Shown: one piece after another, positions 8,571 to 64,000 of the stretch
How positions within the stretch are numbered: position 1 is the stretch's first letter
Layout: each line of letters begins with the position of its first letter
NCBI GenBank assembly: GCA_965113315.1
Contig: OZ220371.1
Origin: Podarcis vaucheri
Taxonomy: Eukaryota
Length of the DNA: 64,000 nt
Reading direction: 5' to 3' (one strand)
Position numbers and translations under genes: made by a program
Notes under the pieces: generated by a model
What the model was told of the DNA's origin: nothing
Seen by the model: the letters and a program-made list of their open reading frames with translations, nothing else
The model's database searches: none

Positions 8571-8654
8571 TGTTTAGGTCAGAGATGGGGACTCTGTGGC
8601 CCTCCAGTTGTTGTACAGCCATCAGTAATGGATGCTTTAGTTGAAATTATTGTG

Positions 8655-8722
8655 TTGAGGGGGATTGGACTAGATGGCCCTTGGGATCCCTTCAAAACTC
8701 TACAATTCAATGTTTCTATAAT
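8655..8722 (+). mobile_element. CR1-type 3' tail fragment
   Basis: GGGGATTGGACTAGATGGCCCTTGGGATCCCTTC..ACTCTACAATTC matches the CR1 3' end at 41875-41936. Confidence 0.65.
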
Positions 8723-10128: not shown

Positions 10129-10250
10129 TGGTGCTGATAACACCATGGTTCCAGGTTCAATTCCCACATGGGACAGCTGCATATTCCTGCATTGCAGGGG
10201 CTTGGCCTAGATGATTCTCAGGGTCCCTGCCAACTCTACAATTCTATGAA
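10118..10250 (+). mobile_element. tRNA-head / CR1-tail SINE (Squam2 / P.s.1-like)
   Basis: B-box GGTTCAATTCC followed by CCTGCATTGCAGGGG..CTAGATGA..CCAACTCTACAATTCTATGA (CR1 3' end). Confidence 0.7.
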
Positions 10251-40912: not shown

Positions 40913-41936
40913 CAAGGGTGCTCATCAATGGTTCCTCTTCATCCTGGAGAAGAGTGACTAGTGGGGTGCCACAGGGTTCTGTCTTGGGCCCGGTCTTATT
41001 CAACATCTTTATCAACGACTTGGATGATGGACTCAAGGGCATCCTGATCAAATTTGCAGATGACACCAAACTGGGAGGGGTGGCTAACACCCCAGAGGAC
41101 AGGATCACACTTCAAAACGACCTTGACAGATTAGAGAACTGGGCAAAAACAAACAAGATGAATTTTAACAGGGAGAAATGTAAAGTATTGCACTTGGGCA
41201 AAAAAAATGAGAGGCACAAATACAAGATGGGTGACACCTGGCTTGAGAGCAGTACATGTGAAAAGGATCTAGGAGTCTTGGTTGACCACAAACTTGACAT
41301 GAGCCAACAGTGTGACGCGGCAGCTTAAAAAGCCAATGCAATTCTGGGCTGCATCAATAGGAGTATAGCATCTAGATCAAGGGAAGTAATCGTGCCACTG
41401 TATTCTGCTCTGGTCAGACCACACCTGGAGTACTGTGTCCAGTTCTGGGCACCACAATTCAAGAAGGACACTGACAAACTGGAACGTGTCCAGAGGAGGG
41501 CAACCAAAATGGTCAAAGGCCTGGAAACGATGCCTTATGAGGAACGGCTAAGGGAGCTGGGCATGTTTAGCCTGGAGAAGAGGAGGTTAAGGGGTGATAT
41601 GATAGCCATGTTCAAATATATCAAAGGATGTCACATAGAGGAGGGAGAAAGGTTGTTTTCTGCTGCTCTGGAGAAGCGGACACGGAGCAATGGATCCAAA
41701 CTACAAGAAAGAAGATTCCACCTAAACATTAGGAAGAACCTCCTGACAGTAAGAGCTGTTTGACAGTGGAATTTGCTGCCAAGGAGTGTGGTGGAGTCTC
41801 CTTCTTTGGAAGTCTTTAAGCAGAGGCTTGACAACCATATGTCAGGAGTGCTCTGATGGTGTTTCCTGCTTGGCAGGGGGTTGGACTCGATGGCCCTTGT
41901 GGTCTCTTCCAACTCTATGATTCTATGATTCTATGA
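40913..41936 (+). mobile_element. 5'-truncated CR1 LINE
   Basis: RT motifs [39 protein letters not shown]; (ATTCTATG)n tail. One reading frame with nonsense codons at 41326 and 41761. Confidence 0.95.
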
Positions 41937-56919: not shown

Positions 56920-57011
56920 TTTGCAATCTTCAAAGATCTCAACAGCTGTCACCATGGAAGAAGGAAATAGCTTGTTTTCTCCTGCTCTGGAGGGCAGGAC
57001 ATGAATAATAA

Positions 57012-57069
<58 letters not shown>

Positions 57070-57633
57070 TAATTTATTATTTATTCCCCAGTCACTCTGG
57101 GCGGCTTCCAACAGAATATTAAAATACAATAGTCTATTAAACATTAAAAGCTTCCCTAAACAGGGCTGCCTTCAGATGTCTTCTAAAAGTCTGGCACTTG
57201 TTCTTCTCTTTGACATCTGGTAGGAGGGTGTTCCACAGGGCGGGAGCCACTACCGAGAAGGCCCTCTGCCTTGTTCCCTGTAATTTGGCTTCTCGCAGCG
57301 AGGGAACTGCCAGAAGGCCCTTGGAGGTGGACCTCAGTGTCCGGGCAGAACGATGGGGGTGGAGATGCTCCTTCAGGTATACTGGACCGAGGCTTCAAGT
57401 TATAAGAAAGGTGATTCCAACTAAACATCAGGAATAACTTTTTTTGACAGTAAGAGCTGTTTGACAGTGGAATGGACTGCGTCAGAAGATGGTGGACTCT
57501 CCATTTTTGGAACTTTTTAATCAGAAGTTGGATGGCCATCTGTCATGTATGTTTCAGTTGAGATTCCTACATTGCAGGGGTTTGGACTAGATGATCGTTG
57601 GGGTGCCTTCCAACTCTACAGTTCTATGATTCT
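56920..57633 (+). mobile_element. Old CR1 3' fragment split by an L2 insertion
   Basis: ..HMEEGNSLFSPALEGRT (to about 57004) resumes as GGCTTCAAG..GACAGTAAGAGCTGTT..CCAACTCTACAGTTCTATGATTC (57391-57633). Confidence 0.8.
57005..57390 (-). mobile_element. 5'-truncated L2 fragment with long (TTA)n tail
   Basis: Minus-strand C-terminal RT peptide region (RAFSVVAP..W) similar to the L2 at 25178-25450; (AAT)n at 57005-57072. Confidence 0.85.
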
Positions 57634-57847
57634 TTGAAGGCATGTGCTTTGCTACTAGCAATAGTCCTTCCCCACTGAACGCCTGACTTGTGTAACCCTC
57701 CTTTCATCATTCAAATGAATGAATGAATAAATTTATTACGGTCATAGACCAGAAGAAAGGGAAAAAAACAAAACATAAAAGGCAGCAATAATTTACAAGG
57801 GAATGGTGGTGTCAGTTAAAAGTTGTAAAATTATACATAAAAACAAT

Positions 57848-57884
<37 letters not shown>

Positions 57885-57955
57885 TACTCATATATGCACT
57901 ACAGTATATGTATGGGCTTAAAAAAGGGGGGGGGCTTATCCAGGGGTCAGATCTT

Positions 57956-60900
57956 TTACTTTTTTACAGCTAATGCCCTCCGCTTGATCGCGGCCGCAGA
58001 AAACTTGGCCACTTTCAATGTTACTTCTGGGTTTTTGTCTCCTAGTAGGATTTTCAGCCGCTGAGATTCAGATCGACCTGGAAATTTCTGAACGATAGGG
58101 GAGATAAACAGTAACCTGATATCCCCGTAAAGGTCGCAGTGTAACAACACATGTGAAGCCGTTTCCACCTCCTTCAGACCACATGGGCAAACTCGTTCAG
58201 CATAGGGTGTGCCCTCGTATCTGCCCTTTAGTAAGGCAGATGGCAATACATCAAATCTAGTAAGGGTAAACGCCCGCCTATATTTTGCGATTTGTAGGTC
58301 CATCAAATATGGGGTTAGGTTAAACCCTTTTCCATAATCTTGGATAGCTGGATATTTATCTATCTTGCTCATATGGTCCTGAAGCTCTACATCTCCTATT
58401 CGCTGGCTCACCATCATTTTAGCCTTTTCAAAGCCTGAGGCTATAAGTTCTTGTGAGGAAAGCCCCAGGCCCCTCAGTTTTTCATAGAGCGACAATCTCC
58501 ATTTAGACTGGAACGGGTCTAGTAGAGTCAATGGAGCCACTCCCACTGGGAAAAATATGAGTTTTAGCCAGAAATGAATCTTCAGGATCCATATCCTGGC
58601 ATTAATAGGGAGTTGGCCAACCTCCAGCCTAACGGCAGTGTTAGAGACACAGGTAGGTAACCCTAGTAGGGAACGATAAAATTTAGTTTGTACAGATTCC
58701 AGGGACTTGAGTTTTTGACAATTAAATATCTGGGTGCCATAGGTCAATTGTGGAAGTATTTTTGCAACAAAGACCTGGGAGGCAGCGGGAACATATTGAC
58801 CTCCTTTTCTATAAAAGAATCTTATGATAGCTCTGGAAGATCTTTGCGCATTTACAATGGAATTCTTAATCTGATGGCACCAAGATCCCTTCTCATCGAA
58901 AATTATTCCAAGATATCTAAAAGATGTTACTTGCTCAATAGGTTGGTTATTAATTTTCCATTTATGTCGGAGTTTTCTCTTGGAGAACACCATAATTTTT
59001 GATTTGGTGTAGTTTATTATTAGGTGTTCAGCTTCGCAATACTCTGTAAGAGCTCGTAAAAGTTTTCTTAGACCCACACAAGAGAAGGAAATAAGTGCCG
59101 CATCATCCGCGTACAAAAGGACCGGGATTGGTGTATTATTTAGATTTGGGGAGTGAGTACTTGCTTCCTCCATCTTTCCGACTAAGGAGTTTATATAGAA
59201 GTTAAAAAGAATAGGGGCAAGAACACAGCCTTGCTTGACACCATGGGAACTTTGGATTTCCTTTGATAGGTTCCCATAACGGTCGCATCTAACACGGATC
59301 CGAGTATTTTCATGTAGTCTATGGATAAGAAGCAAAAGACGTCTATCGATGTTTGTGACATTTAGTTTTTCCCAAAGTCTGTGCCGGGGTATCGAGTCGA
59401 AGGCTGATTTGAAATCTATAAAGGCTACATAGAGAGAGCCTCCTTTCTTTGAGGTGTATTTCTCCACTAGATGTTGCAATACCAGTCCTTGGTCTAGAGT
59501 TGATCTATGTGCCCTGAAGCCAGCCTGGGCTTCCTTTAGGATGTGCTCCTGTTCTAGCCAGTCCGCAAACTTTTCACGTAAGTGAGTTGCATAAAGTTTG
59601 CTGATGATGCTTAAGAGACTGATTGGTCTGTAATTGGCTGGATCAAGTTTACAGCCTTTCTTGAATATGGGAACGATGATTGCCAATCCCCAGTCCTCTG
59701 GTATTATTGCTGTTTGATCTATGCTGGTGAAAAGGGTGGCAAGGACTGGGGCCCACCAGTCAATATTGGCTTTGAGAAGTTCAGGAGAGATGTTATCTGC
59801 TCCCGGGGCTTTTCTGTATTTGAGTGCCTGAATAAGCCTCCTAATCTCCGCAACCGACACCGGAGGCCACTCATCATCTGCCGCACACTGTATTAGTGGC
59901 TGTGTCAGAGGCAGAGCTGAATATGAAGATTGAAAAAATGCCTCCCAAGTCCCTGCAGGTATAGTATACTCCACTTCTGAGGAAGTAGGTCGCACTCCAT
60001 TTGCTACCAGTCTCCAGAAGGTGGCCGAATCTCTCTCTCTGGATACATCTATTAGGCATTTCCATTCTCTTTTCTGTGCCAGGAGTTTTTTGTTTTTGAT
60101 CAAAATTTTATAATTCCGTTTATCTTCAAACCAGCCCGTGGGGAGTTGGGGTAAATTGGCAGATCTATAATTCTTGTATTTTTTCAGTAAATTTAGCTTC
60201 ATATCCTGACATTCTTGATCGAACCAGGGTTTGGAGTTTTTATATACTGAGGATTGTCTACTTGGCCTGTTCCTTTTTTCCTTCAGGGGATCTTGAAGGA
60301 GTAAAATTAGCTCCTGAAATAAATTTATCTTTAATTCATGGCTTGAGGAAGTTATGAGGTTTTCTCTCTTAATGAGGAATTCCTTTGAGCATAGCCTACT
60401 TGAAATTTCCTTATGCAGTTCATCTGTCCATCTAATGCGCGAATATCTGAGCTCCAAAGCTGTAGGGCTCGAATGCTCGATTTTTTCAGCGCAGGATAAA
60501 TCCTTTCCCGCAGCCACAAGTGCACTTAATGGCAGATGATCACTGTCTAAGCGCTCCTCCACTTTGCATTCCAGAACTTTGTTTTGAAGATCATACGACA
60601 CAATTATATAATCAATTGTGGAGGCGCCATTGTTAGATATAAATGTGAATTCTCCGACCTTCTCCCCCTCTGTGCGGCCATTTAATATAACCAGGTCCAA
60701 CTTATTGACCAAGTGTAGTAGGCATAAGCCGGCATAATTGCAGCCTTTATCCTTTGAGATTCTAGCTGGTATTGGGTGGGTTTCCTCTATAATGGGGGCT
60801 GTTTCGTGGAAATGGGCACACAAAGCCTCATCAGATTGTCCAGTTCTGGCATTTAGGTCACCTGCCACCACTACAGAGGCATCAGGAAATTGATTTAGTA

Positions 60901-61321
60901 GTTTGTCAAGATACTGTTCTAATTGAGCCCAAGTATTTCTTATCAGTCTTTTCTCTCTTTGTGGAGGTAGGTATACATTAATCAACAGCCAGCTTTGGGT
61001 TCTCCACTGTACTTGCACAGCTGTGGCCAGATGGTCTAGTGGGTCTAGTTTTTTAAATGTGGCCCTTAGCCTTGTTGAGATTAAGGTAACTAACCCACCT
61101 TTAACTCGCCCCCCTCTAGTACTTGAAAGACCTGGGAGGGAGAACGCAGAAAAACCATTTAACTCCACTTCACTTGTGCTCCAGGTCTCCTGGAGAAACG
61201 CAATGTCATGTCTCTGGATATATTTAGCAAAGGATTGGTCAGAACGCCTCTTTTGCCAGCCTGCAATATTCCAAGTTAGCAAGGCAAGGTTGCACGTTGT
61301 CTTGCCAAAAATTGGTCTTAG
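57956..61321 (-). CDS. LINE ORF2: APE endonuclease, reverse transcriptase, C-terminal zinc knuckle; no AUG start
   Basis: TWNIAG, LQETW, GDLNAR, IDY, SDH; NYRPISLL, FIDFKSAFD, GVKQG, LYADD; CPC..ETASHVLLHC. The frame is open from the ORF1 stop; the first Met is at 60202. Confidence 0.92.
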   Translation of the reverse strand, partial: LRPIFGKTTCNLALLTWNIAGWQKRRSDQSFAKYIQRHDIAFLQETWSTSEVELNGFSAFSLPGLSSTRGGRVKGGLVTLISTRLRATFKKLDPLDHLATAVQVQWRTQSWLLINVYLPPQREKRLIRNTWAQLEQYLDKLLNQFPDASVVVAGDLNARTGQSDEALCAHFHETAPIIEETHPIPARISKDKGCNYAGLCLLHLVNKLDLVILNGRTEGEKVGEFTFISNNGASTIDYIIVSYDLQNKVLECKVEERLDSDHLPLSALVAAGKDLSCAEKIEHSSPTALELRYSRIRWTDELHKEISSRLCSKEFLIKRENLITSSSHELKINLFQELILLLQDPLKEKRNRPSRQSSVYKNSKPWFDQECQDMKLNLLKKYKNYRSANLPQLPTGWFEDKRNYKILIKNKKLLAQKREWKCLIDVSRERDSATFWRLVANGVRPTSSEVEYTIPAGTWEAFFQSSYSALPLTQPLIQCAADDEWPPVSVAEIRRLIQALKYRKAPGADNISPELLKANIDWWAPVLATLFTSIDQTAIIPEDWGLAIIVPIFKKGCKLDPANYRPISLLSIISKLYATHLREKFADWLEQEHILKEAQAGFRAHRSTLDQGLVLQHLVEKYTSKKGGSLYVAFIDFKSAFDSIPRHRLWEKLNVTNIDRRLLLLIHRLHENTRIRVRCDRYGNLSKEIQSSHGVKQGCVLAPILFNFYINSLVGKMEEASTHSPNLNNTPIPVLLYADDAALISFSCVGLRKLLRALTEYCEAEHLIINYTKSKIMVFSKRKLRHKWKINNQPIEQVTSFRYLGIIFDEKGSWCHQIKNSIVNAQRSSRAIIRFFYRKGGQYVPAASQVFVAKILPQLTYGTQIFNCQKLKSLESVQTKFYRSLLGLPTCVSNTAVRLEVGQLPINARIWILKIHFWLKLIFFPVGVAPLTLLDPFQSKWRLSLYEKLRGLGLSSQELIASGFEKAKMMVSQRIGDVELQDHMSKIDKYPAIQDYGKGFNLTPYLMDLQIAKYRRAFTLTRFDVLPSALLKGRYEGTPYAERVCPCGLKEVETASHVLLHCDLYGDIRLLFISPIVQKFPGRSESQRLKILLGDKNPEVTLKVAKFSAAAIKRRALAVKK

Positions 61322-63577
61322 TCAATTTGCCTTTGAAAGATTTTTTGGGCCTATCTTTTTATCTGTTAGTTGGATTTCATTCATTTTGGCAATGTCCATA
61401 GATGTATTATCGCCCAGGTACTCAATGGAATCAATTGAGGGGTGCAGCGTGCTAACGTTAGTGATCAGTACTCCTTTTTTTGGCGAGTCCACCTTGAGGT
61501 GTTCTATTTGACTGGTGCCAAGTTCATCCTCATCCAGGTATCTCATGCTGGTCCAGGAGCGCGTTGTGGTTGCCATAGGGATGGTTTCCTTCTTAGATGG
61601 TAGGTTGTTGCTGTCCCTTACGCACTGTGTTAGATCTGTTGTTGTCAGGTTTATCTCTGCAGCTGCAGAGGTAATATAAGGGTAGTCCTTCGTGGTTGCC
61701 ATAGGGATGGTTTCCTTCTTAGATGGTAGGTTGTTGCTGTCCCTTACGGGCTGTGTTGGATCTGTTGTTAACAGGTTTATCTCCGCAATTGTAGAGGTAT
61801 TATAAAAGTAATCTTTCATGAGGTCTGTCTTAGCTTTTTCAGAGAGGTTCTCTTTCTTCAATTGGTCCGTTGCCGGTTCTTTCTCTCTTACTTTTTCCTG
61901 AGCATTCATCTCTGTTAACTTATTTCTAAGGGTCTCCAGTCTTCTCAAGATCTCAGATTGGGCAAAGAAAGGCAACAATCCAAACTGGTTTATTAATGCC
62001 TTTTCTTCTGGATAGAAGTTATCCATCCCCTCATTAGGCAATCTCATCTCCTGTCTTAGTTTCAAGGGCCCTTGCTCAGTATGTTCCAGTTTGTCTTTTG
62101 AGTGTCCTCTCTCCTCCTTTGGTTTACAAGTAAATCTTATCTCAGCAGTCGTAAACTCATCAGGGAACAATTTCAAACATGTGCTGTTTTCGAAAAATCT
62201 TGTTACCGTTATCCTTTTCTTTGACAGCAGATGTCTTGATCTATATATATATTTAGCCAAGTTTTGATCTTTGAAGGAGGTAATCACTCGCAGAGAATAT
62301 CCATTGTAGAATATGAAATCTACTGAGGTAATGTCATTTAATTTTATTTTCCCTGGCAGCATATCATCTAAAATATTCACAAAATGCACCAAGCGTTCTT
62401 CCTGTGTAAGGAAGCCCTTTGGCTTCGGGTAGTTAAGAAAAGCTAACTTCCTATCTGCCAACATCAGTTTCCATCCTTTATCCTGGGGCAGGTCTTGCCC
62501 TGCTACTGGCTCATCTTGAAATCTGCCATAATCAATAGTGTGGGGTGAGTCTTCTTTAATATTTATGGATCCTTGGGGTTTCAGCATAGAGCACCCGGGT
62601 AGTGATTCCGTTTCCTCACTTGTTTTATTAGGCAGCAATGATGTTTCTTTCAGAGACTTCAGCTGGATCTTTTTTCCTGGATCCACACTGTTGTTCTCTC
62701 TGCTGCCATGTGTAGCAGGTTTGTTAGAGTTTGTTTTTGATTTTGTTGGAATCAGCTTATATAGTCTTTTCCAGCATACTTTGCATGCACGTCGGTTTGT
62801 AACAGATTTCCTTGCAGTTTTTATGTTCTTACTTTTCTTTTTAGTTTCAGCTTTCTTCTTATGGGATCTCTTACTAATGCCTCGCTTCTTTTGATTTACT
62901 TCAATAGGAAATTCAGTTTTAGGGGCAGATACATGCAGTCCTATGTCCTTTCCTTGGTGTAAATGATTTTCCGCTGCTGATCCTTGTGTGCACTTGCTGG
63001 TTGCTGGTTGCTTTGTATATTCTGGCCCTTGAGGGGTGGTTTGTGGATCAACACCATAGGGTTCTGAGCCTTTAGCTTGGAAGGGATAATTTTCCACTAA
63101 TGTCAGGAGCAGCCCGTTTGTTATTGTTAAGTATTTTTTCATAGCTGCCAGATCCAGATTTATAGAGAGCAGCCAGTCCTGAGGATAGCAGTCATTGTTT
63201 TCCGTCTGGGAGCCCATAGATGAAGTCTGGGGTTTCTGGGAGTTTCGGGTTTCTTCGTGTAGCTCTGAAGATAATATCTCAGCCAAGACTATTTCATGGG
63301 CCAGGCTCATTGTATTTCTATTTTGGTTGTTATTCTCTGTGTCCTGTATTCCTCTAGAGAAGGTTGAGTGATCTTGAGCAGCAGAGGGAAAAGGAAGAGC
63401 CTCATCCTGCTTCAACTCAGCCATCTCAGCCATCTTTTGCTCATTTCCATTTCCATTTTCGTTGTCCCTTGTGTGTAAAAAGTATTGCGTGATTTTACTC
63501 TGTTTCTCATAACACTCCTGGAACAGTGGGCTTGTCACTATCCCCAGGTCCCTACATTGCTTTCTGGTAAGTACCAT
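61322..63577 (-). CDS. LINE ORF1 (751 aa from the first ATG), putative RNA-binding protein
   Basis: Uninterrupted frame upstream of ORF2; Lys/Arg-rich tract with CxxC, RRM-like segment, coiled-coil-like helices, 42-aa tandem repeat. Confidence 0.8.
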   Translation of the reverse strand: MVLTRKQCRDLGIVTSPLFQECYEKQSKITQYFLHTRDNENGNGNEQKMAEMAELKQDEALPFPSAAQDHSTFSRGIQDTENNNQNRNTMSLAHEIVLAEILSSELHEETRNSQKPQTSSMGSQTENNDCYPQDWLLSINLDLAAMKKYLTITNGLLLTLVENYPFQAKGSEPYGVDPQTTPQGPEYTKQPATSKCTQGSAAENHLHQGKDIGLHVSAPKTEFPIEVNQKKRGISKRSHKKKAETKKKSKNIKTARKSVTNRRACKVCWKRLYKLIPTKSKTNSNKPATHGSRENNSVDPGKKIQLKSLKETSLLPNKTSEETESLPGCSMLKPQGSINIKEDSPHTIDYGRFQDEPVAGQDLPQDKGWKLMLADRKLAFLNYPKPKGFLTQEERLVHFVNILDDMLPGKIKLNDITSVDFIFYNGYSLRVITSFKDQNLAKYIYRSRHLLSKKRITVTRFFENSTCLKLFPDEFTTAEIRFTCKPKEERGHSKDKLEHTEQGPLKLRQEMRLPNEGMDNFYPEEKALINQFGLLPFFAQSEILRRLETLRNKLTEMNAQEKVREKEPATDQLKKENLSEKAKTDLMKDYFYNTSTIAEINLLTTDPTQPVRDSNNLPSKKETIPMATTKDYPYITSAAAEINLTTTDLTQCVRDSNNLPSKKETIPMATTTRSWTSMRYLDEDELGTSQIEHLKVDSPKKGVLITNVSTLHPSIDSIEYLGDNTSMDIAKMNEIQLTDKKIGPKNLSKAN

Positions 63578-63977
63578 TTGTAAATCTTTGTCCACCCAGC
63601 TATGGGCTAAGGTCCAAAATGAGGCAAGATTTGGGATAGCTGTTTGTAATTTGTAATTTGATAGCTTATAGTTCAGAGCGTAGCACGGAGTTGGCAATAA
63701 ATCAGCTGTCAACCGTTTTCCTTGTTGTCGGTCAGACTTGAGGGGTGCGGCGTCGCGGGGAGCAAAACCCTCCGGACATCAAGATAACAAGGTAGCAAAG
63801 GAGCTCTTTTTCTTTAGAAGCAGCAAGCTAAAAGGACTATTAAACTACTTAAAAAACTCTGGAGGAGTTAAAAAATATTATAAAGGGAGTTTCAAAGGTT
63901 GGCCCGGTGTCGAGCCTGTTTAAAAAGCAGATTTAGAACTTGCCTCAGATAACCTCCAGAACTCTGCAGCTAGTTCG

Positions 63978-63988
63978 GCGGCCATCTT
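63978..63988 (-). promoter_or_regulatory. YY1-type motif in the LINE 5' leader
   Basis: AAGATGGCCGC on the element's sense strand, near its presumed 5' end. Confidence 0.5.
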
Positions 63989-64000
63989 CGCCTCCTGCCG

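Follow-up and report, generated by a model that had tools for sequence, protein, structure and literature searches.

How is the second open reading frame (ORF2) of a long interspersed nuclear element (LINE) translated from a bicistronic RNA? The question is open, and experimental answers exist only for L1 (reinitiation) and SART1 (stop-start coupling). Here, we address it for a LINE in a 64,000-nucleotide (nt) stretch of Podarcis vaucheri DNA (NCBI GenBank assembly GCA_965113315.1, contig OZ220371.1), hereafter the window, which is free of N runs and carries a single copy of the element. The two ORFs of this LINE share one frame and are separated by a single TGA, and an original prediction, made from the sequence alone, had proposed that ORF2 is reached by reading through that stop. 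We found that the stop and the frame are conserved among close copies, that an AUG is absent ahead of the endonuclease, and that the same architecture extends across a clade of distant relatives. The best explanation, in our judgment a moderately probable one, is that ORF2 is translated via stop-codon readthrough as a rare ORF1–ORF2 fusion.

The sequence and its translation confirmed the letters of the junction, the shared frame and the single TGA as originally described. On the minus strand the junction reads GCA AAT TGA CTA AGA CCA ATT TTT GGC AAG ACA ACG TGC AAC CTT GCC TTG CTA ACT TGG AAT, and the features on either side of it are as follows.

63577-61325, minus strand: ORF1, opened by the ATG at 63577 and 751 codons long, ending ...NLSKAN, with no internal stops in the translation.
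61324-61322, minus strand: in-frame TGA, the sole stop separating ORF1 from ORF2 (sequence and translation).
61321-61319, minus strand: CTA codon directly 3' of the TGA; UGA-CUA is a type II readthrough context (table in PMC13517186).
61321-57959, minus strand: ORF2, 1121 codons in the same frame as ORF1, with a TAA at 57958-57956.
61271-61315, minus strand: candidate hairpin past the stop, CCAA-UUGGCAAG...CUUGCUAA-CUUGG, or a 6-bp stem of GGCAAG (61306-61301) and CUUGCC (61288-61283).

ORF1, stop and ORF2 together make 1873 codons (751 + 1 + 1121), which is the fusion length that had been predicted. The element is an apurinic-type endonuclease (APE) LINE: its ORF2 combines an N-terminal endonuclease (Exo_endo_phos, residues 15-262, E = 6e-14) with a reverse transcriptase (RT; RVT_1, residues 554-807, E = 4.6e-33) and bears a CxC...H...C motif at its C-terminus, and the same Pfam search found no protease domain in the element. 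Endonuclease homology begins about 10-15 codons past the stop. As had been claimed, the ORF2 frame lacks an AUG until 60202; the first ATG is codon 374 (60202-60200), 3' of the endonuclease. No ATG occurs in any of the frames within the first 90 nt past the stop, and at the other end of the element the ORF1 ATG is preceded by no other ATG back to the closest in-frame stop, 68 codons upstream. The layout used by L1 for termination-reinitiation, an inter-ORF spacer followed by an ORF2 start codon, was thus not found: the spacer between ORF1 and ORF2 has zero length, and the first ATG comes only at codon 374.

Under readthrough, most ribosomes would end at the UGA and yield ORF1p, and a small fraction would decode UGA-CUA with a near-cognate tRNA and carry on. 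The product would be a 1873-aa ORF1p–endonuclease–RT fusion, the only source of ORF2 activity, at a ratio of ORF1p to fusion resembling that of gag to gag-pol. The decoding event, its efficiency and the fusion as the active form are what we infer from the sequences described below.

The stop is shared by close copies. Eight distinct ORF1 homologues from other assemblies (738-753 aa, 88-95% identical) form two subfamilies, one 95% and the other 88% identical, and every one of them terminates in ...KAN; several of these calls lie on contigs equal in size to contigs bearing ORF2 calls. The intact ORF2 calls (at least 10) never reach upstream of the stop, and no fused ORF1–ORF2 gene call was found among the ORF2 homologues, the longest of which has 1249 aa where lengths up to 1962 aa were eligible. 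We also aligned contigs or reads of four organisms to positions 60500-62300 at a likeness of at least 80%. The junction is bridged by high-depth contigs of three organisms, A, E and H (X1 record 3, 61256-61486; X8 record 20, 61289-61486; X12 record 9, 60500-61394); the raw-read run gave only about 2x depth there. Among the differences listed for the four organisms, none falls at 61319-61324 and no indel occurs within 60500-61700. In X8 record 20, all five differences were placed away from TGA-CTA; in the X1 and X12 contigs, two or three differences lie outside those listed, so the case for invariance at TGA-CTA is slightly weaker there. The change nearest to the stop is at 61315 (CCA to TCA, Pro to Ser), in the third codon past it. 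The expectation that TGA-CTA is kept among copies was therefore borne out, and ahead of the endonuclease we found neither an AUG nor a frameshift, two of the features that the original prediction had named as speaking against it.

In comparison with other species, 13 of the 21 listed ORF2 differences are synonymous, and the 19 listed at the end of ORF1 comprise 11 synonymous and 8 non-synonymous ones. Judging from these counts, the synonymous excess indicates purifying selection on both ORFs in their shared frame. On the evidence of the copies compared here, the TGA is no private nonsense mutation but is conserved in a probably active family. Additionally, plus-strand G>A, i.e., a sense-strand C here and a T elsewhere, is the dominant kind of difference between this copy and the other-species contigs over 60500-62300 (18 of about 39 differences in X8), a pattern that is asymmetric between the strands.

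We then looked at distant relatives, sought in a collection of bacterial and archaeal genomes and in metagenomes, whose ORF2 is 25-29% identical over nearly its full length. They lie on short contigs of symbiont metagenome-assembled genomes (MAGs; e.g., a Sulfurimonas endosymbiont of Alviniconcha, a snail, and bins of Sedimenticola and Thiodiazotropha) and in soil and aquatic metagenomes, and these contigs are presumably host or environmental invertebrate DNA. Loci including the ORF2 N-terminus were walked upstream in the ORF2 frame, with a minimum of 100 codons for an upstream ORF, and the layout was determinable in 40. Exactly one in-frame stop separates a same-frame upstream ORF (104-691 codons) from ORF2 in 30 of the 40, against an expected one third (binomial p = 8e-8, a value that overstates the case because the loci are non-independent); counted by lineage in the first data set, about 10 in-frame lineages stand against 3 others (p = 0.002). 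Among the 16 in-frame loci of the first scan, the upstream ORFs of 12 align with one another and are thus mutually homologous, and a profile of these 12 matches human L1 ORF1p (2ykp, E = 6e-12); the other upstream ORFs, including those of metagenome loci, were classed by open frame alone. Stop and endonuclease lie anywhere from 0 to 294 codons apart, which implies frequent indels under a retained frame.

The stops themselves are biased. UAA is the least leaky stop, and it is nearly absent from the 30 in-frame loci (TAG 25, TGA 4, TAA 1), whereas the nearest in-frame stops in the other 10 loci are TAA in 5, TGA in 3 and TAG in 2. The base after the in-frame stop is G in 26 loci, C in 3 and A in 1, compared with 18.5% G in ORF2 overall (16 first-scan loci), and the codon after it is mostly GAC, GGG, GAA, GGA or GTT; the TAG-CAA-CCA of one relative agrees with the tobamovirus CAR-YYA type. 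An ATG between stop and endonuclease is present in only 3 of the 30 in-frame loci versus 6 of the 10 with other layouts (Fisher p = 0.003). In ORF2 trees (path lengths above 3 substitutions per site), the in-frame state occurs throughout. It extends over a clade of 38 sequences with 99% support, to which the lizard family belongs; three nested lineages changed to other layouts, and two long-branch outgroups are not in-frame.

Because the frame is conserved, the stop is single, UAA is avoided, an AUG is missing only together with the shared frame, and the contexts are known ones, it is ribosomes already in the ORF1 frame that would seem to decode ORF2. On a wider scale, recoding of one in-frame stop (mostly UAG-G, and UGA-CUA in lacertids) may be the sole ORF2 route in an ancient metazoan L2/CR1-like lineage whose hosts range from marine and soil invertebrates to lizards, a proposal for which we consider the arguments on either side evenly balanced. 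The lizard family would then have swapped the common UAG-G for UGA-CUA, and the long, poorly conserved ORF1 tails ahead of the stop in relatives would serve as linkers.

ORF1 occupies the +1 frame in some of the relatives without the in-frame layout (L085, L099 and L115 from metagenomes, and L021, L028 and L034 from the genome collection). ORF1 overlaps the ORF2 start by 13-67 nt in L085, L099 and L115, and L085 has no ATG ahead of the endonuclease, which suggests that a programmed frameshift might be another route to a fusion there.

How does this arrangement compare with known systems? That UGA-CUA is an established readthrough context, as had been stated, is correct: the type II signal is UGA followed by CUA or CGG, and a 2026 review lists it for Sindbis virus (UAC UGA CUA ACC, with a stem-loop from +16), O'nyong-nyong virus and PSIV (PMC13517186). 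The lizard LINE resembles Sindbis virus nsP3/nsP4 and PSIV in having the same UGA-CUA and a possible hairpin from 7-16 nt downstream. Vertebrate genes with readthrough at UGA-CUAG include AQP4, LDHB and MDH1, and to our knowledge UGA-CUA is the leakiest short context in vertebrate cells. The lizard LINE has A rather than G as the seventh base, and its downstream structure is short and not statistically robust. The TAG-CAA-CCA of one relative corresponds to the type I site of tobacco mosaic virus (UAG-CAA-CCA). Similar in organization are two retroviruses, the gammaretrovirus Moloney murine leukemia virus (MoMLV; GAC UAG GGA, type III, with a pseudoknot at +12) and the epsilonretrovirus walleye dermal sarcoma virus (WDSV; UAG GAU) (PMC13517186). 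As proposed for the LINE, they encode a structural RNA-binding protein and a polymerase in one frame with a single stop, and a rare fusion supplies the enzyme; as in the invertebrate relatives, UAG is followed by G, where the relatives often have GGG, GGA or GAC. Conversely, the LINE is an element without long terminal repeats (non-LTR), lacks a protease, has no detected pseudoknot and, in the lizard, uses UGA-CUA and not UAG-G.

Among LINEs, human L1 and Bombyx SART1 are similar in that a bicistronic RNA yields far less ORF2 than ORF1 product and that ORF2 depends on events at the ORF1 stop. They differ in that an ORF2 AUG and a spacer of 63 nt are present in L1 and an overlapping AUG (UAAUG) in SART1, whereas the lizard LINE has neither spacer nor AUG and its clade keeps the shared frame. 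Some plant LINEs may have an in-frame amber stop. The one precedent that the literature search yielded concerns Paramecium: in its group 3 LINEs, ORF1 and ORF2 are in the same frame, and the authors inferred readthrough of the ORF1 stop (PMC5405496); unlike the present case, that clade is ciliate-specific, and readthrough was suggested in one sentence from consensus sequences with no context analysis and no metazoan or vertebrate example. A review of LINE protein biogenesis gives stop-start coupling, reinitiation, internal ribosome entry sites (IRES) and 2A, not readthrough (PMC3894237), L1 and SART1 are treated in a review on reinitiation (PMC5972666), and a study of ORF1 in the Jockey superfamily is silent on frames, stop codons and readthrough (PMC4120745). 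Gag-pol-type readthrough is thus known in viruses and not previously established in metazoan LINEs: we found no prior account for a metazoan LINE ORF2 in the full-text literature searched, with subscription literature and Repbase notes outside that scope and a prior mention there possible.

The predicted stem-loop fared less well. Its arms are present, and GGCAAG (61306-61301) pairs with CTTGCC (61288-61283) in minimum-energy folds; the extended hairpin (CCAA..UUGGCAAG / CUUGCUAA..UUGG) comes out best when the first 55 nt are folded. Relative to shuffled sequences, however, the fold has z = −0.35 for 106 nt and −0.33 for 200 nt, and reaches −2.9 only in the 55-nt window, which was picked after the fact. 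Every copy seen has the same bases in the stem, so covariation gives no verdict, and the hairpin stays a candidate. Many of the first 16 relatives have a run of G at +12 to +15 (G at +14 in 14 of 16), and many invertebrate loci (L015, L016, L018, L020 and L023; L013, L014 and L009) combine such a run with G at +4 (TAG GRNNNNNN GGGG ARAGCC). The run encodes x-x-x-G-K/R-A, in one subgroup x-x-x-G-K-A, which is close to the F-G-K-T found about as far from the stop in the lizard; it may reflect a constraint on the peptide rather than on the RNA.

Several points weigh against readthrough. The 106- and 200-nt folds of the lizard junction show no conserved or robust downstream structure, and RNAalifold revealed no convincing conserved one in two subgroups of relatives; over the 70 nt past the stop in 17 junctions, mean z is −0.62 versus 0.02 in ORF2 control windows, a marginal excess of structure (Wilcoxon p = 0.045). 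In the closest relatives, the vertebrate P0002 (58-63% identity) and P0003 (36%) as well as P0015 and P0018, conservation was judged by protein ends. We know of no evidence that UAG-G is leaky without a pseudoknot. As the element has no protease, the endonuclease would need to act with 751 residues of ORF1p still attached. Finally, translation of human L1 ORF2 reportedly tolerates loss of its AUG (Alisch 2006).

The alternative that survives best is that ribosomes terminate and then reinitiate, or start in some other way without an AUG at the stop, within about the first nine ORF2 codons. ORF1p and ORF2p would then be separate proteins and their shared frame historical. In-frame near-cognate codons are available within the first 14 codons (ATT at 61312, AAG at 61303, ACG at 61297 and TTG at 61282), the zero spacer could partly freeze the frame, and the folds of lizard and relatives' junctions contain no strong readthrough-stimulating structure. 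Precedents are the unconventional termination-reinitiation proposed for L1 and the stop-start coupling of SART1, which is aided by downstream structure (PMC5972666). However, reinitiation does not predict the same frame and a single stop in 30 of 40 relatives despite indels, and it predicts neither the loss of AUG that tracks the in-frame state nor the avoidance of UAA; moreover, reinitiation after a long upstream ORF was argued to be inefficient in a 2013 review (PMC3894237). We rate this alternative as unlikely, though weighty enough to temper what was first proposed: fusion by readthrough is partly supported, by the conserved stop and frame, the missing AUG and the clade-wide layout, and is qualified by this competitor.

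It is improbable that ORF2 is translated apart from the ribosomes on ORF1, through an IRES or a shorter or spliced transcript starting near the junction. IRES-type non-AUG initiation has been discussed for LINE intergenic regions (PMC3894237), whereas this element has no intergenic region and its last 300 ORF1 codons evolve as coding sequence; frame conservation and stop bias would also go unexplained. We consider A-to-I editing by ADAR very improbable. It would turn UAG or UGA into UGG (Trp) in a fraction of transcripts, as happens at the hepatitis delta virus amber/W site, and would likewise give the fusion; the stop bias suits it in that 29 of the 30 in-frame stops are UAG or UGA, the only ones one A-to-I change from UGG, and UAG is the preferred ADAR triplet. 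Against it, no strong double-stranded structure surrounds the stops, the lizard UGA has A after its G, the least favoured ADAR neighbour, and one relative has TAA. Scarcely credible are a private nonsense mutation in a dead single-ORF copy (e.g., CGA to TGA, CpG decay often yielding TGA), which is effectively ruled out by the same stop in the eight ORF1 calls and the high-depth contigs of other species and is at odds with the lack of any fused call above 1249 aa, and a selenocysteine codon, which is unsupported, as the Rfam scan found neither a selenocysteine insertion sequence (SECIS) nor any other Rfam element.

If readthrough is the route, it would be a third solution for ORF2, beside L1 reinitiation and SART1 coupling, and a retrovirus-like gag/gag-pol arrangement without a protease. 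A young vertebrate family and 30 distant relatives share the in-frame stop without an AUG behind it (apart from the three ATG-bearing loci above). The fusion would set the ratio of ORF1p to ORF2p and build cis-preference physically into the ribonucleoprotein. The UAG-G sites of invertebrates would form a large natural set of candidate readthrough signals outside viruses. LINE ORF annotation would change as well, as gene callers truncate ORF2 at an internal GTG or TTG.

The lizard family illustrates this last point: all 1070-aa ORF2 calls begin at Val52, a GTG, which is a spurious start that prokaryote-style gene calling gives to an ATG-less ORF. At least 10 such calls are distinct and intact, come from independent assemblies and are 94-97% identical; near-identical copies are numerous in several organisms, and the 90% protein cluster of ORF2 includes UniRef entries of Podarcis muralis. 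Because so many ORF2 calls are intact and nearly identical, this is probably a young and active full-length LINE family of lacertid lizards.

As for its type, ORF2 matches human L1 ORF2p and R2 about equally and only in the RT region (PDB structures, E about 1e-22 to 1e-16), so the element is probably not an L1. It has the APE, RT, C-terminal Cys/His motif and microsatellite tail of L2/CR1 LINEs (Metcalfe and Casane 2014, PMC4120745). ORF1 in L2/CR1 is of the Tnp22, esterase, PHD or unclassified type; the relatives' ORF1 matches L1 ORF1p (Tnp22), as in several L2/CR1 subgroups, and the ORF1 of one L2 subgroup gives no hits, like that of the lizard (PMC4120745). The remaining features of the element are the following.

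57714-57955, minus strand: 3' untranslated region (UTR) with a (TG)n microsatellite at 57878-57849, the signal AATAAA and, at its end, an (ATTC)n/(CATT)n tail (57732-57714).
63578-64000, minus strand: 5' UTR or sequence upstream of it; the element may begin outside the window.

The (ATTC)n tail at 57732-57714 probably marks the 3' end of the element. Microsatellite tails such as (ATTC)n are typical of stringent L2/CR1-type LINEs, and a long ORF1 with such a tail is presumably not suggestive of RTE-like elements. Together with the L1-type ORF1p seen in the relatives, the tail suggests an L2/CR1-type element (Jockey superfamily) rather than the RTE-X of the original prediction, a tentative assignment made from tail and ORF1 type.

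The lizard ORF1 is less readily placed. Pfam, PDB sequence search and ESM Atlas gave no known domain or homologue, its match to the relatives' ORF1 profile is weak (hhalign, E = 0.06), and a poor single-sequence AF2 model (pLDDT 50) found no matching fold in Foldseek. Near its C-terminus ORF1 holds a 42-aa tandem duplication (126-bp repeat, 1.9 copies, 91% identical, 61566-61805), and one other-species contig has an in-frame 6-base deletion in this repeat region, at 61730-61736.

Some minor observations concern the surroundings of the element and the collections searched. Dozens of full-length eukaryotic LINE contigs (loci L002-L081) are filed under symbiont MAGs, including a gammaproteobacterial bin and Brevinema, and look like mis-binned host DNA. 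A 236-kb contig in a viral collection (IMGVR_UViG_638276401_000001, L001) carries an RT-domain relative with 29% identity over ORF2 residues 453-805. In the window, a different dispersed repeat lies directly 3' of the LINE tail (57401-57637); it is 75-85% similar to 41702-41936, 10183-10249 and 8610-8717, is probably a short interspersed nuclear element (SINE) or another short retroposon, and is followed by an (AAT)24 microsatellite at 57004-57073.

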